DNA from: Auanema rhodensis
Lineage: Eukaryota > Animalia > Nematoda
Direction: 5' to 3'
Assembly (NCBI GenBank): GCA_964057225.1
Contig: OZ059900.1
Location: 9,858,001 to 9,922,000, forward strand
Length of the DNA stretch: 64,000 bases
Under the pieces are notes generated by a model. The model saw only the letters and a list, made by a program, of their open reading frames with translations. It did no database searches and had not been told where the DNA came from. Both the position numbers and the translations under genes were made by a program. Positions 423 through 63,467 of this stretch are shown here, one piece after another; positions within the stretch are counted from its first letter, which is position 1, and each line of letters opens with the position of its first letter.

Positions 423-792
423 TTATTCAGGTTCATTGAAAACCTCGGCGCTGAAAACAAAATTCAATACAAATCAGAATTACAACACTTACGTTTTCAT
501 CTTCAAACTGTCATTTAATCCCCTGAATCTATACTTTTGGTACTTAAACTCGGCCAATTCATCAGAAGAGACAAGACATCCATCGCGTAAGCTTTCTTTT
601 ATTTCCGTAAGCATTGCTCTCATTTTATCAAACATCATACAATGAAGTTTGAGATGTTTCACTTGTAAGGTGTGAGTTAGCCGTTCTTCTACTTGAGTAT
701 GAGAAGCAAACTCGGTTAACTTCTGTTCACAAAGATCTCTGATTTGTTCATCACTGAGATCGTTTTCGTTGTTCATGCTCATCTCTTTAACT
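423..792 (-). CDS. Divergent, possibly 5'-truncated member A of the lineage-specific helical 'EYRK' family
   Basis: VEERLTHTLQVKHLKLHCMM...LAEF...F aligns with the EExxxxxMQLEYRKLH...EF...F block of the 50-63 kb paralogues. It has the same phase-2 terminal intron (ac|gtaagt...tttcag|c) and a last exon 423-450 (AEVFNEPE*). The 5' end is uncertain. Confidence 0.55.
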
Positions 793-50686: not shown

Positions 50687-51370
50687 ATGTCTGGATTGGT
50701 AAGTCTGTCTTTAATTCTATGCATGTTACTCTTTTCGTTGCAGGGTGAAAAAGCTGGTTTCTACGAGCACGATAATATATTTCGAGTGGAGGAAGAACAT
50801 TTTACTTGTTCACATAAACAGAAAGTCATTCATCGCATCTTCGAAATCAAAGATATTCGGGATCGTAAAGAGAGTCGTGCTAAGCGGTTGTACAACTTGC
50901 AACAGGTTAACCCAGTGCTTGTTAGCAGTATCAGCAATAAGATTTTTGAACTGGATGAAAAGGAAGAAGATCTGATGGCCGATCTTCGTTCAATCAATCA
51001 CCTTTCATTGGATATGATTCAGTTAAGAAGGACGATTGGCCAGATTAGATCTCGAATTCAAGAACGCACGGAGCATATGAATGAGGAAGAGAGATCAACT
51101 TACCTTATGCAAATGGAATATCGTAAATTTCATTCACTCGTATCGGAATACATGAAGTTTATATGTAATCAAGCTGTACTTTATATGATAGCTCGTCATC
51201 CTATTCCTCTTGACTTGATGGAAGAGTTTATAGGCACTCGCCAATATTTTTCCAGGATGAGAAAGAACATGAAATCAACTTAGTACGGTTTCTGCTTTTA
51301 ATAATTGTAATCTCATATTTTCAGTCTGGCGAATTGCAAGCTGTTTGATAAGATCAGAGCAAGCACTTAG
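50687..51370 (+). CDS. EYRK family member B
   Basis: Exons 50687-50698, 50744-51282 and 51325-51370, with the motif EERSTYLMQMEYRKFH. Confidence 0.8.
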
Positions 51371-56019: not shown

Positions 56020-56682
56020 ATGGTTAGTTAGTTTGAGGCTGTCAATTGCGTATATTTAATTTTAGGCCGTAGCATTACCTTTTCACCTTGACTACTATAT
56101 CTTGCAAAAATCCGAGCGAACTTTTGAAAAACAGTTAAAAGATTTAGAGCATGCGAATCGGAAGGACATCGAAGCTTTAGTGTCTGCTAGAATGGATCGT
56201 CTTCTGATGAGTCAAGAACTCGAAAAACACCATCCAGCTCTTGCATTACATTATCAGACACTGTGCTTGAAAATCAATGAGATAGAAGATGTGCTGATTG
56301 ATCGCATTAAACAATATACAAAAGCTGTTCAAAACCTATTCTCTGTGAAGAAACATTTGTCTAATATTAGAAGACTTCTGGAAATCAGAACTAATTCTCT
56401 CGGAGAAGAAAAGAGGCACCACTACATGATGCAACTGGAGTACCGGAAGCTGCACCATATGATTACGGATTACGTGACATTCTTCAAAAATCAAATTGAA
56501 GCATACGAAGAAGCGGATAAGAATTTCCCAGATGAATTGATTAAAGAATTCGGATCTAATCTGTCAAGATTCAAACAGATGAGAGAGGAGCTACAAACCA
56601 AAAGGTTAATCATCAGCTAGTTTCAAAGTGAATTAACTTTTTTTTCAGTACGAATATGCGCAATTACTTTGAAGAGGAGTAG
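56020..56682 (+). CDS. EYRK family member C
   Basis: ATG|gttagt, exon 2 from 56066, and a phase-2 last intron. Motif EEKRHHYMMQLEYRKLH. Confidence 0.8.
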
Positions 56683-58450: not shown

Positions 58451-59108
58451 ATCGATCGATAAACCGTCTACTCTGAAGTTTTTTTACTTTTATAGGTTCA
58501 GAAGAGTTTTAGATAATTGTAGTATTTGACGTTATTTATATGTCATAGTTAACTATGTGATATGAACTCAGATATATATTCTAAGATCATCCTTGTTTCA
58601 TCTTCCAATGTATTGTCAATCTCGTTTTGATGTTCAAAGGTATCACAAAGGAGAATATAATGAAAAACTAAGATTCCAAGTATGAGAAGAGCAATCTTTA
58701 CGTTGTTTCGTCTCTAAAACTTTATTTTGTTATAGTTTATATCTGCTGTGAAGTCTTCAAAAAATTTTCTTAGTTTTTCATCCTATTCTCTTTTACCTCA
58801 AATTCAAGTAATAGTACTCATTATAATAAGTATATTGAGATTCAATCGTAGAAGATTTCATTTTGTTTATCAACGTCGCTTTTTCGTTTTCTTTTCTCAT
58901 TTCGCTCGGAGGCCAAATTTCTAAATTTCTATGTACGAAACTTGGAAGTATCGGTTATCAAACTTTTGATGCAGCCTTATGAGAAACTTGAAAATCTTAA
59001 TTTTATAAAACTTGTTTAATCCTTATTTCTCAAACAATAACTTATCTAATTATGAAACATTTCATTGAACATCAATACAAAGCAAAAAACTCAAATTATA
59101 AGAATATT

Positions 59109-59789
59109 TCACGGATTATGTCTCCTTTCAGAAAATAATTGACGTAGACCATCGCTAGAAAACAAATTTTGAAATATTGTTAAAAACAGTTAAAGAAGTT
59201 ACCTTCTTGTCGTCAAATATGTTTTCACTTTTTGGAAATGAGCTCTGAACGAAGAAAACTCTTTCAAAAACCCAGTCGGAGGAAGAACACCAGCTTGAAG
59301 AAATTGGTTTGCGTGATTGCACAAGAATCTCATATAACCTGTTATCAATAAAAACAGTTTTCGGTATTCGAGTTTCATCAAATGAGTAAATTTTTCTTCC
59401 ACACTCATGTTTTGTGGTGGTGTATCCAGTATTTTTGTTAACTGAGCTATCATTCTCTGCTGATAATAAAGTTCAGTTGTTGAACGATTGGTCAAATTCA
59501 TCTCCAAAGTCAGAACGTCTTCTCTTTCCTCTAATTGAGAGCTCAATTCTTTCATTTTAACCGAAATATCTGGTTCCAACTGTTGTACGATACTGAGCAA
59601 TTCATTACGACGTTGCCTTTCATCTGTAGCTACCGTAATATTATGTTGATGGATGCTATCAATAGTAATTTGACAATTAGAAAGCGTTGTCTCATCTATG
59701 AGTAATTGTTCATAGCTTTTGCTAAATATTTCCCTGAACGTCTGAAATCTATTAAATAATAAAACTATGGAAGAAAAATATTTAACCAT
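59109..59789 (-). CDS. EYRK family member D
   Basis: ATG|gt, exon 2 from 59741 (TFRE…), a phase-2 last intron, and last exon SDGLRQLFSERRHNP*. Confidence 0.85.
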
Positions 59790-59967
59790 GCTAAGTATAG
59801 TTCTCTATTTTAATGAAAATTCTTGAAGCTTTAGATAACTCACAAAAATTGTTAAAATAATAGAAGGATGGTAGAGAAGAATGGAAGTGAAATAAAATAA
59901 ATTTTTATGATAAATACCATAGAACGAGGGTGGCTAAATGAAAACAATATGCCTTATAAACACGTTT

Positions 59968-60450
59968 TTTTTGCTACCAGCAAAACACCTTGTCTGATTA
60001 AGATCTGATTTAGAAAACAAGCTGTTGCACTTTAATGTTATGCATTATCTTACAAAACAATATTTGCTGTAAGTTGTTATCAAGCTTTCAAGCTTTGAAT
60101 AAATATTTTCCTCACTATAACATTAGTGAGAATTCAAAAATTTCTATAGGGTCTTTTTAGACCCTAAGGATGAAGACTTGGCCTAATTAACAGTGTGGTT
60201 TTAGAATCAATTTTCGTTCAGCAAATCATGCCAGATTCTGTTCATAATTTATGAAATGTGTACTCATTCTCAGCTCATAAATATGGAAAAAACTTCATAA
60301 TTGAATGAGAAATTTGTCGTTGTACCAAAGAAAAAATAAGGAAATATAAAAACTCTGGAAAACTGTGGAATAATATGTATACATGACATGCTCAATTCAA
60401 TTGCAATACCTCATTTCCCGCCAAACAATAGAGCACATTTGAACCTTTGT
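59968..60450. repeat. Upstream region of D, near-identical to 61840-62588 apart from two indels
   Basis: Long identical runs such as agatctgatttagaaaacaagctgttgcac… and cgttcagcaaatcatgccagattctg…. Confidence 0.9.
60414..60443. promoter_or_regulatory. E2F/DP-type site TTTCCCGCCAAA with nearby TTTGAA
   Basis: Matches the E2F consensus. Similar sites occur at 62550, 63596 and 8017, upstream of other accessory genes. Confidence 0.35.
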
Positions 60451-61042
60451 TATCGTTTTTTTTATTTTTAAATAAATATGTGATTCGAATGAGAATCCAA
60501 AAATAAATTTTACGGGTTTGATAGATCACTACAACAAAAGATGTTTTGCATAACTTCGATGCCATGGTTTATATCTGATACCGTATCTTACATGGGTGTC
60601 TATCTTTGCTATTATCCAATTGAAGGATACACAACGCTCTTCTCACAATTTTGAGAATAAAATCTTATTAAAAACTGAAAATCATTTCTTCATAGATGAA
60701 TAGAAAGATTTGAAAGCATTGGATGAATTTAGGTGATCAATAAGATTCCAATTAAATAAAAATTATAATATATAATCATGAAGTAAACAATAATATTTAT
60801 CTGTTAATTGTATTCTAATTTCAATTTATCAGTTTGAAGAGCGAGGGGGGGTATTTTCAAATTATCAATACTAGCATTAGCATTGGATATAATTTCATTT
60901 TATCATAATTTATTCATAAATCTCTCTCTCTCATATTCACTAATTATGTGGTTGAAGGTGAATGAATTTGAATCATTAATGTTTGAAGAAACATTTCATT
61001 GAACATCAATACAAAGCAAAAAACTCAAAATATAAGAATATT

Positions 61043-61723
61043 TCACGGATTATGTCTCCTTTCAGAAAATAATTGACGTAGACCATCGCTAGAAAACAAA
61101 TTTTGAAATATTGTTAAAAACAGTTAAAGAAGTTACCTTCTTGTCGTCAAATATGTTTTCACTTTTTGGAAATGAGCTCTGAACGAAGAAAACTCTTTCA
61201 AAAACCCAGTCGGAGGAAGAACACCAGCTTGAAGAAATTGGTTTGCTTGATTGCACAAGAATCTCATATAACCTGTTATCAATAAAAACAGTTTTCGGTA
61301 TTCAAGTTGCATATAGTATGCAAATCTTTCCTCGACTGTCATGTTCAGTACCTTGAGCTCAACCATTTTTTTCATCTGAAGAGCTTTATGCTTGGCATCC
61401 TTGACTTCAACTGTTTTTTGATTCGCTTGCAGAAACCAGGTGATAAGGTTATCTCCCTTCTCATTCAAAATAGAATTTATTTTTTCCATTCTTGCACCTA
61501 TATCTGGCTCTAACTGTTGTACGATACTGAGCAATTCATTACGACGTTGCCTTTCAGCCAAAATTCTTGTAAAATTTCTTTGTTGTGCAGACATAACTTT
61601 CGTCATGTTTCGATCATAAGCTTTCTTAATGTTAATGAAGTGATTGTAATCATCGCGTGAACGATGTCTAAAGGTCTGAAATCCATTAATAAAGTAAAAT
61701 ATGAAAATAAAAGAACTAACCAT
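61043..61723 (-). CDS. EYRK family member E (tandem paralogue of D)
   Basis: Same three-exon structure as D. The 3' third, last intron and 3'UTR are almost identical to D. Confidence 0.85.
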
Positions 61724-62809
61724 ATTCAATATATGTAGTTTACTATATTTGAAGATGGATTTCTTTGAAATATCAGAACAAATAAAAAAAGGCAACCGTA
61801 GAAGAGGAAAAATGAATACAATATTCCTTATACATAAAGTTTTTTGCTACCAGCAAAACATCTTGTCTGGTTTAGATCTGATTTAGAAAACAAGCTGTTG
61901 CACTTTAATGTTATGCATTATCTTAAAAACAATATTTGCTGTAAGTTGTTATCAAGCTTTGAATTAATATTTTTGGTTTTCATATGAAATAGGTTACTAA
62001 ATTAATAATTTCCTCACTATAACATTAGTGAGAATTCAAATATTTCTATAGGGTCTTCTTAGACCCTTAGGATGAAGACTTGGCCTAATTAACAGTGTGG
62101 TTTTAGAATCAATTTCTGTTCAACGTACGGTATATGGGTGTTACGACGACACCAATTCTAAAGATAGCATCAAAAATCATTTATGAACACTTCTTCAATA
62201 TTATCAACCTAATATCATCATAGCTGAGAATCAACTTATTGTCTTTTGAGCGGTCTAATCTGCAAACATGGGAATTCTTTCTGAGTTCGCCTAAATAAAG
62301 ATTCATATTATAATTGCATCACTTGCGGACACTGCTCTTCTTCTCAAATTCGTTCAGCAAATCATGCCAGATTCTGTTCATAATTTATGAAATGTGTACT
62401 CATTCTCAGCTCATAAATATGGAAAAGACTTCATAATTGAATGAAAAATTTGTCGTTGTACCAAAGAAAAAATAAGGAAATATAAAAACTCTGGAAAACT
62501 GTGGAATAATATGTATACATGACATGCTCAATTCAATTACAATACCTCATTTCCCGCCAGACAATAAAGCACATTTGAACCTTTGTTAGTACTAATCATC
62601 TACCGTATCATATCAATTTTCAATTAGAATGCTTCATATTTGTGTTGTAATTTGTGAAAAGGTTTTACGTCAAAAAAATAAAAATCTCGTAATAGAAAAA
62701 ATATTTATAATTCACAGTAAAATATTTATTAATACACAGAAAAATTCTTAAAATTCGATAAAACATTCTACAAAACCTTAATTTCTTCAATGGTAGACCA
62801 CTGGTACTT

Positions 62810-63467
62810 CTATAACGGCGAAATATGCCGGATATCATTACTTAAATTAGATTTAAATTCCAATCAGAAACTAATAACTTACCATGCTGTTGTCAACTTT
62901 ATTTTCATATTTCTAAAACGTTTCAGATTACAGTGCAACTCGGAAAGTATGCAGTCAGGAATAGGAATACCAGCCTTCAGATAGAGTTCGGCCTGGTTTT
63001 GAACAAATTTCATGCAATCGATCATGAAATAATAGAGCTTTCGGAATTCAATAAAAAGTAAGGAAGTGAGTTTATCTTCTAGGCTCAAATCTTTCATCGT
63101 CATTTCCAGCAATCTTCTAATGTGGACTATCCGGTTTTTCATTACTTGGCTATCCAATAGTAGCTGATTATCTCGATGTATCGCACAAATCAGTTCATCT
63201 TCCGCAACGTTCAATTTAGAGTTGAGCACACTAATGTCATTGGCAATATTGGAATCTAGCATATCAGCAATTTCAAGTAGCTGGAAACGGCAATGTCTCT
63301 CATAAGTAATTCCATCCAGTATCTTCTTCTGATCAGCATTTTTTCTTATCTGAGAATGCCCAAAATCATCTTCGTATACGAGATCGTAATAAAAATCTCT
63401 ATTTGATCGTAATGTTAATGCCTCAAAAAAAAATGATATAATACCGAAATGAAAACTAAATTACCAT
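62810..63467 (-). CDS. EYRK family member F
   Basis: ATG|gtaatt, acceptor tttttgag, exon 2 from 63421 open in frame, and a phase-2 last intron. Motif EDKLTSLLFIEFRKLY. Confidence 0.78.

Follow-up and report, generated by a model that had tools for sequence, protein, structure and literature searches.

We analysed a window of 64,000 nucleotides (nt) of the nematode Auanema rhodensis, corresponding to C8:9858001-9922000 of a 181-Mb assembly (C8 being contig OZ059900.1), and within it a pair of tandem paralogues, genes D and E. Coordinates are those of the window unless they carry the prefix C8. The window is AT-rich, with a GC content of ~31%. D and E have the same exon-intron layout (Table 1), their reading frames are open and their splice sites intact, and the two proteins align collinearly and without indels across all 185 amino acids (aa). 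No signal peptide was seen in either protein. There was no evidence of transcription of D or E; a single 194-nt contig (59491-59684, depth 3) came from a run that is only guessed to be RNA, and it contains no splice junction.

The two genes alternate between blocks that are near-identical and blocks that have diverged beyond recognition, the contrast being 99% compared with 45% identity. Reading from the 5′ side, a distal upstream block is shared by D and E, one part of it being 98% identical (235/240) and the rest 94%; the E copy carries two stretches of its own, of 226 nt and ~30 nt. The longer of these (62123-62348) is unique genome-wide and is either a deletion in the upstream copy of D or a non-repeat insertion in that of E. 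Closer to the genes the similarity is lost. The proximal upstream DNA (160 nt 5′ of the ATG in D, 98 nt in E) aligned at 0.79, no better than the 0.77 ± 0.03 of shuffled sequences, and intron 1 is partly similar, at 80% identity compared with 65% for shuffles. In the first variable segment, V1 (codons 2-41), D and E have 20% of their aa and 40% of their nt in common. V1 is followed by an island, ERQRRNELLSIVQQLEPDI (residues 42-60), in which 19/19 aa and 55/57 nt match, including an identical run of 45 nt (59622-59578 in D, 61556-61512 in E). When the mismatches of positions 1-372 were permuted, 0/100,000 permutations gave a run of 45 nt, and the longest permuted run was 25 nt. The second variable segment, V2 (codons 61-124), again has only 28% of its aa in common between the two genes. 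The gene then ends in a 3′ block in which both of the D-E differences are private to D, at 59313 (giving H144) and at 59096. Within it, intron 2 is identical at 78/78 positions and the 3′ untranslated region (UTR) at 51/52, and 0/20,000 permutations of mismatches reached its identical run of 110 nt. The similarity stops abruptly at 59054 in D and at 60988 in E.

The shared blocks were considered as a transposon or dispersed repeat and this was rejected, as they occur in only two to three copies genome-wide: three for the 3′ block and two for the distal upstream block. The core of D is present once. No donor for it was found elsewhere in the assembly, where only the island matches anything.

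Much of this layout had been described from the letters alone in the original prediction. The indel-free collinearity, the near-identical last intron and 3′ UTR, the identical island with more than 40 nt of identical DNA, and the minority of residues shared by the segments on either side of it all held. Two statements need qualification. A C-terminal region of ~70 aa with one difference was claimed, which is slightly generous; this is correct for residues 125-185, where position 144 (H in D, Q in E) is the only difference, and incorrect for residues 113-124, which hold six more. Coding DNA is more diverged than adjacent non-coding DNA only if the distal flanks are taken for comparison, and not when proximal upstream DNA and intron 1 are.

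The age of the blocks was estimated from the proportion of synonymous differences (pS) and from nonsynonymous and synonymous substitutions per site (dN and dS), using Nei-Gojobori counts for each segment. Between D and E, synonymous sites are saturated in both variable segments, with pS of 0.72 in V1 and 0.76 in V2 and a third-position identity of 33-41%. The corresponding dN is 1.07 and 0.69; to the extent that dN/dS can be estimated, it is about 0.25-0.44. In the 3′ block, dS is 0.03. The nt identity of V1 and V2 (0.40-0.49) equals the family-wide median for the N-terminal part (0.42).

A search of the organism's own genome identified a second locus that serves as an internal control. A gene named G3 lies at C8:9769891-9770424 on the opposite strand, 148 kb from D and E, and shares 80% of its aa with E and 60% with D. 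G4, a decayed D-type pseudogene with stops and frameshifts, follows ~1.8 kb downstream (L024:3640-4100, C8:9771640-9772100). G4 retains an ATG/GT start (the slash marks the exon boundary) and a D-type N-terminus (MTFREIFPAHYEQFLINK...). Its 3′ part shows no homogenisation with any of the three genes D, E and G3. Two loci therefore have an E-type gene with a D-type gene behind it, in the same order and orientation, and the D-type/E-type split is accordingly older than the duplication of the pair.

The comparison with G3 also revealed a further tract. The alignment of E and the spacer 3′ of it (61747-60490) with G3 and the G3 spacer is unbroken. Across V1, the island and V2 the identity of E and G3 is 72-76%; at 61375 it jumps to 97-98%, a level that is kept over the 3′ end and all of the spacer. 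Of the changes in the 3′ block, two are found only in D, Q144H among them, and none only in E; G3 differs from D and E by seven substitutions and one indel. The exchange between D and E is therefore younger than that between E and G3. Phylogenetic trees conflict in the same manner. In a tree of the N-terminal part (112 columns), D falls outside a well-supported pair of E and G3, while in a tree of the C-terminal part D, E and G3 form a clade at 99/99 with almost no branch length. The distal upstream block of D has no counterpart between G3 and G4; it matches the upstream DNA of E, which is itself 79% identical to that of G3. This distribution points to copying of the distal upstream block from E to D. 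By hand count the island has an identity of 67-72% to G3 and to G4 alike, and this near-equal distance favours neither direction of exchange.

Table 1. Features of the D/E region and other members of the family in the window
Feature	Position	Strand	Remarks
Gene D, 185 aa	59109-59789	-	ATG 59789-59787; intron 1 59786-59742 (45 nt); main exon 59741-59203 (539 nt); intron 2 59202-59125 (78 nt); last exon 59124-59109
Gene E, 185 aa	61043-61723	-	ATG 61723-61721; intron 1 61720-61676 (45 nt); main exon 61675-61137 (539 nt); intron 2 61136-61059 (78 nt); last exon 61058-61043
Distal upstream shared block, D copy	59950-60452	-	94-98% identical to E copy; most likely copied from E upstream
Distal upstream shared block, E copy	61822-62588	-	Includes the 226-nt stretch absent from D; partly homologous to G3 upstream
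Old core of D, 5′ part	59623-59949	-	Proximal upstream DNA without similarity to E, ATG, intron 1 and V1; V1 and ATG region resemble G4
Old core of E, 5′ part	61557-61821	-	Proximal upstream DNA, ATG, intron 1 and V1; 74% nt identical to G3
Island, D copy (codons 42-60)	59566-59622	-	45-nt identical run plus two synonymous differences
Island, E copy (codons 42-60)	61500-61556	-	Sole genome-wide DNA match of the middle part of D
V2 of D (codons 61-124)	59370-59565	-	Helix 2; 49% nt identity to E
V2 of E (codons 61-124)	61304-61499	-	82% nt identical to G3
3′ shared block, D copy	59054-59369	-	Codons 125-185, intron 2 and 3′ UTR; differs from E copy at 2/316 nt; three copies in the genome
3′ shared block, E copy	60988-61303	-	Logan contig (short-read unitig), its depth about double that of the variable parts
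E/G3 shared tract, ~900 nt	60477-61375	-	97-98% identity; sharp bound at 61375
Spacer between E and D	60453-60987	.	Present once in the window; identity to the spacer 3′ of G3 97-98%
Paralogue next to E	62888-63382	-	About 28% aa identity to D and E
Paralogue	56090-56605	+	Family match
Paralogue	50747-51280	+	Family match
Partial match, C-terminal part of the family	495-746	-	Family match

We believe that D and E are very probably old tandem paralogues that have been patched by several recent interlocus gene conversions. They belong to a fast-evolving family, and their original sequences are by now as diverged as those of any two of its members. Recent and separate conversions, or a closely related form of template copying, would then have placed E-type DNA over parts of D, namely ~500 nt of distal upstream DNA and the 316 nt that comprise the last 61 codons, intron 2 and the 3′ UTR. 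The 57-nt island, at the tip of the first predicted hairpin of the protein, would have been exchanged between D and E in one direction or the other. G3, the closer relative of E at a distance of 148 kb, would have exchanged a further tract of ~900 nt with it. The shared identity includes silent sites, intron 2, the UTR and the upstream block (94-98%), as expected of copying and not of constraint. In addition, the identical runs are too long for chance, the trees conflict, and the duplication is older than the tracts. Patchy gene conversion had been offered as one explanation in the original prediction, and in this respect it is supported: the edges of the blocks are sharp, the N- and C-terminal trees disagree, the tracts contain intron, UTR and intergenic DNA, and the second locus dates the split as old. 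The E-to-D direction of the upstream copying and the number of events are our interpretation of these patterns.

Three points weigh against this explanation. The island is a 57-nt tract amid DNA of 40-49% identity, which is short for homology-dependent conversion. The comparison with G3 and G4 suggests that its ancestral similarity was about 70%. Copying of the upstream block needs either homology or template switching, and no such sites were shown. Finally, the order of events depends on one paralogous locus, at which G4 is decayed and its V2 and C-terminus are uninformative.

Conversion between paralogues has been described in Caenorhabditis, where tracts range from 12 to 2,958 nt and most of the surviving ones are 50-200 nt long (PMC3966223). 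Several events can affect one pair, tracts extend into short introns, some segments stay unconverted, and neighbours within a few kb are preferred; examples are col-12/col-13, the hsp-16 modules, the zim/him-8 cluster and fog-2/ftr-1 (PMC3966223). D and E resemble these cases in being near neighbours on one chromosome, with several short tracts, extension into introns and flanks, and unconverted parts. The D/E and E/G3 tracts (57, 316, ~500 and ~900 nt) fall within the published range. Unlike the Caenorhabditis cases, the unconverted parts of D and E are at saturation and the contrast between the blocks is extreme. Intergenic DNA is covered by the D/E tracts as well, with ~500 nt upstream of the genes, and the proteins belong to a family without known relatives. 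D and E can serve as a clean example of interlocus gene conversion with multiple tracts in a nematode, dated by an internal control locus.

A recombination mosaic could also have arisen the other way round, old and new DNA having changed places. The complete E unit, from its upstream block to its 3′ block, would have been duplicated in tandem not long ago, and D-type DNA from a donor such as an ancestor of G4 or a copy since lost would then have replaced the middle of one of the copies, with the island left or restored as E-type. This would make both flanks of D E-like without requiring the upstream block to have homologous ends, and recent segmental duplications are indeed frequent in the region, where identical or nearly identical copies lie 9-112 kb from each other. 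We nevertheless consider this unlikely. The core of D has no donor in the assembly, and two separate imports, one of V1 with the promoter and one of V2, would be required on either side of the island. The spacer between E and D is present once, not twice as a simple duplication of unit plus spacer would leave it. The position of G4 behind G3 mirrors that of D behind E, which fits a D core that was already in place.

A different proposal is that selection keeps V1 and V2 distinct: the N-terminal hairpin would be a specificity module, conversions that overwrite it would be purged, and conversions of the C-terminal part and flanks would be tolerated or favoured. AlphaFold2 models of the two proteins (predicted local distance difference test score, pLDDT, 87 for E and 84 for D) have the same architecture of two helical hairpins. 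The first is long and antiparallel, with helices predicted at residues 2-55 and 57-110 in E and at 10-55 and 57-106 in D; the second consists of helices 114-150 and 158-178. The original prediction had raised the question of whether the variable segments form one surface. In the models the helices that pair in the first hairpin carry V1 and V2, the island forms the end of helix 1 and the turn at the tip, and the hairpin topology suggests that V1 may contact V2. If so, the two segments would have to match each other. Homologous flanks could also permit a double-anchored conversion of the core, yet the core has not been erased, and D and E have both kept open frames and splice sites.

However, the variable segments carry no signal of positive selection. 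Their dN/dS is 0.25-0.44 for D-E and also for D-G3, and 0.23-0.35 for E-G3. No case of dN/dS above 1 with unsaturated dS was found in V1 or V2. The unconverted block includes promoter and intron DNA as well as codons, and the shared flanks are young (0.6-3% divergence), leaving little time for a double-anchored event. V1 and V2 need no resistance to conversion, because an identity of 40-49% in nt offers no homologous substrate, and this lack of homology alone explains why they persist. As judged from the sequences, the persistence of different V1, V2, intron 1 and proximal promoter DNA is probably due mainly to too little homology for conversion; selection against their conversion was presumably absent, since it is simply not needed as an explanation. 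Part of the constant/variable appearance is ordinary differential constraint, because the N-terminal two thirds vary across the whole family and the C-terminal third is a conserved core. Other close pairs in the family have only a mildly lower identity in the N-terminal part than in the C-terminal part, as expected from constraint. The youngest pair, L014/L017, has a dN/dS of 1.17 in the N-terminal part, at a divergence of 3% that leaves too few changes for this value to mean anything. We therefore regard selection on V1 and V2 as distinctly improbable. The original prediction had proposed conversion-resistant specificity segments or strong diversifying selection, and had itself named saturated dS with dN/dS well below 1 as the result that would speak against selection. 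Precisely this was found, and the proximal promoter and 5′ UTR have diverged along with the coding segments.

Constant/variable recognition genes that are kept diverse by selection include those of the major histocompatibility complex (MHC), plant nucleotide-binding leucine-rich repeat (NB-LRR) clusters, gamete-recognition proteins and nematode toxin-antidote pairs. Such systems are marked by variable parts with dN/dS above 1, by a low dS, by high polymorphism or by a toxin gene linked to its antidote. D and E are like these genes in being clustered paralogues with mosaic exchange, and unlike them in that their variable parts have neither dN/dS above 1 nor low dS. No pointer to a toxin-antidote pair was seen in the sequence, no test being aimed at one. 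The proposal that D and E are a candidate for an undescribed recognition system was not upheld, as a well-known process, gene conversion between old copies, best explains the mosaic. They show instead how conversion mosaics can mimic a constant/variable recognition gene. A broader version of the proposal would make the family a set of chromosome-confined proteins with a constant module and a variable hairpin, in which the V1/V2 hairpin sets partner specificity and the C-terminal hairpin is a shared functional module. Conversion would then spare co-adapted V1 and V2, and D and E would be one case of a specificity code. We consider this highly doubtful, and there is no positive support for it.

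Divergence in place, in which two coding segments of young duplicates were driven apart by strong diversifying selection or targeted hypermutation, accounts for no more than the outward look of variable coding DNA flanked by near-identical sequence and is extremely unlikely: it is already refuted by synonymous saturation next to flanks that differ by 0.6-3%, the proximal non-coding DNA is unalignable as well, old relatives exist (G4 for V1 of D, G3 for V1 and V2 of E), and the variable segments have no differences across three DNA studies.

These studies also allowed us to check the assembly, the original prediction having named a chimera or collapse as an alternative. Logan contigs (short-read unitigs) from three independent DNA studies were compared with the D/E region. 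Contigs specific to D (59340-59607 and 59593-60030) and to E (61347-61541 and 61527-61903) have no differences from the window, and each variable-segment contig extends 28-31 nt into the shared blocks, so that all junctions are reproduced. V1 and V2 are without differences under three organism labels, the runs possibly not being distinct strains. In run X1 the depth of the variable parts is ~60-80, the same as that of single-copy flanks, while that of the shared 3′ block is ~155, which fits two full-dose copies and not alleles or a collapse. The contigs are interrupted at the shared blocks and do not by themselves link the two sides of the 45-nt core of the island; G3, however, links E-type V1 to E-type V2 independently. 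With every junction reproduced at zero differences and the D- and E-specific parts at full and not half depth, an artefact (a chimera, a collapse, or the tandem placement of two alleles of a single gene) has a negligible probability. In the contigs of three runs a second version of the spacer was seen at 60536-60637, at about half of the summed depth. It is most likely the copy on the G3 side, which is 97-98% identical, and not heterozygosity.

We also examined the distribution of the family to which D and E belong. A profile built from 18 members and searched against the genome gave 42 matches, all of them within 4.2 Mb (6.18-10.34 Mb) of the 27-Mb contig C8 and none elsewhere in the 181 Mb. 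About 20 of the matches are full-length and open, and the other ~20, some of which form short tandem arrays, are fragments or pseudogenes. The conserved C-terminal core contains the motifs E-Y-R-K, Y-M-K-F, N-Q, P-x-P and E-F. A search of Pfam gave nothing above the cut-off, and a word search of 5.8 billion proteins gave no relative. A profile search of 1.84 billion protein representatives returned only four long coiled-coil proteins, and a sequence search of the PDB nothing below an E value of 0.058. No match was found in the ESM Atlas, either by features or by shape, and Foldseek on the PDB and a wide fold search with VIA found generic helical hairpins only (Z ≤ 10.2). By these comparisons the family has no detectable relative outside this genome. 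Families without relatives are common among the orphan families of nematodes, and on present evidence this one is unremarkable. D and E draw attention to this chromosome-confined family, with ~20 intact genes and ~20 fragments within 4.2 Mb and no relative in ~2 billion protein representatives.

In most members (L001-L019) the first coding exon consists of the ATG alone (ATG/GTwAGT) and is followed by an intron of ~45 nt and a main exon of 539 nt. Many members have a sequence resembling a splice acceptor, TTTCAG or TTTTAG, 60-100 nt 5′ of the ATG, which is possibly a trans-splice site. Identical or near-identical members occur in pairs 9-112 kb apart, namely L005/L006 (C8:9645708-9646241 and C8:9536414-9536947), L019/L020 (C8:9656326 and C8:9768537) and L014/L017 (C8:9773072 and C8:9764222), which implies recent large segmental duplications in the region. 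At C8:9325126-9334773 there are four tandem units with a period of 2,676 bp, each containing two partial family matches, one of which has an in-frame stop. A similar four-copy group of family matches with stops is located at C8:6984592-6995991.

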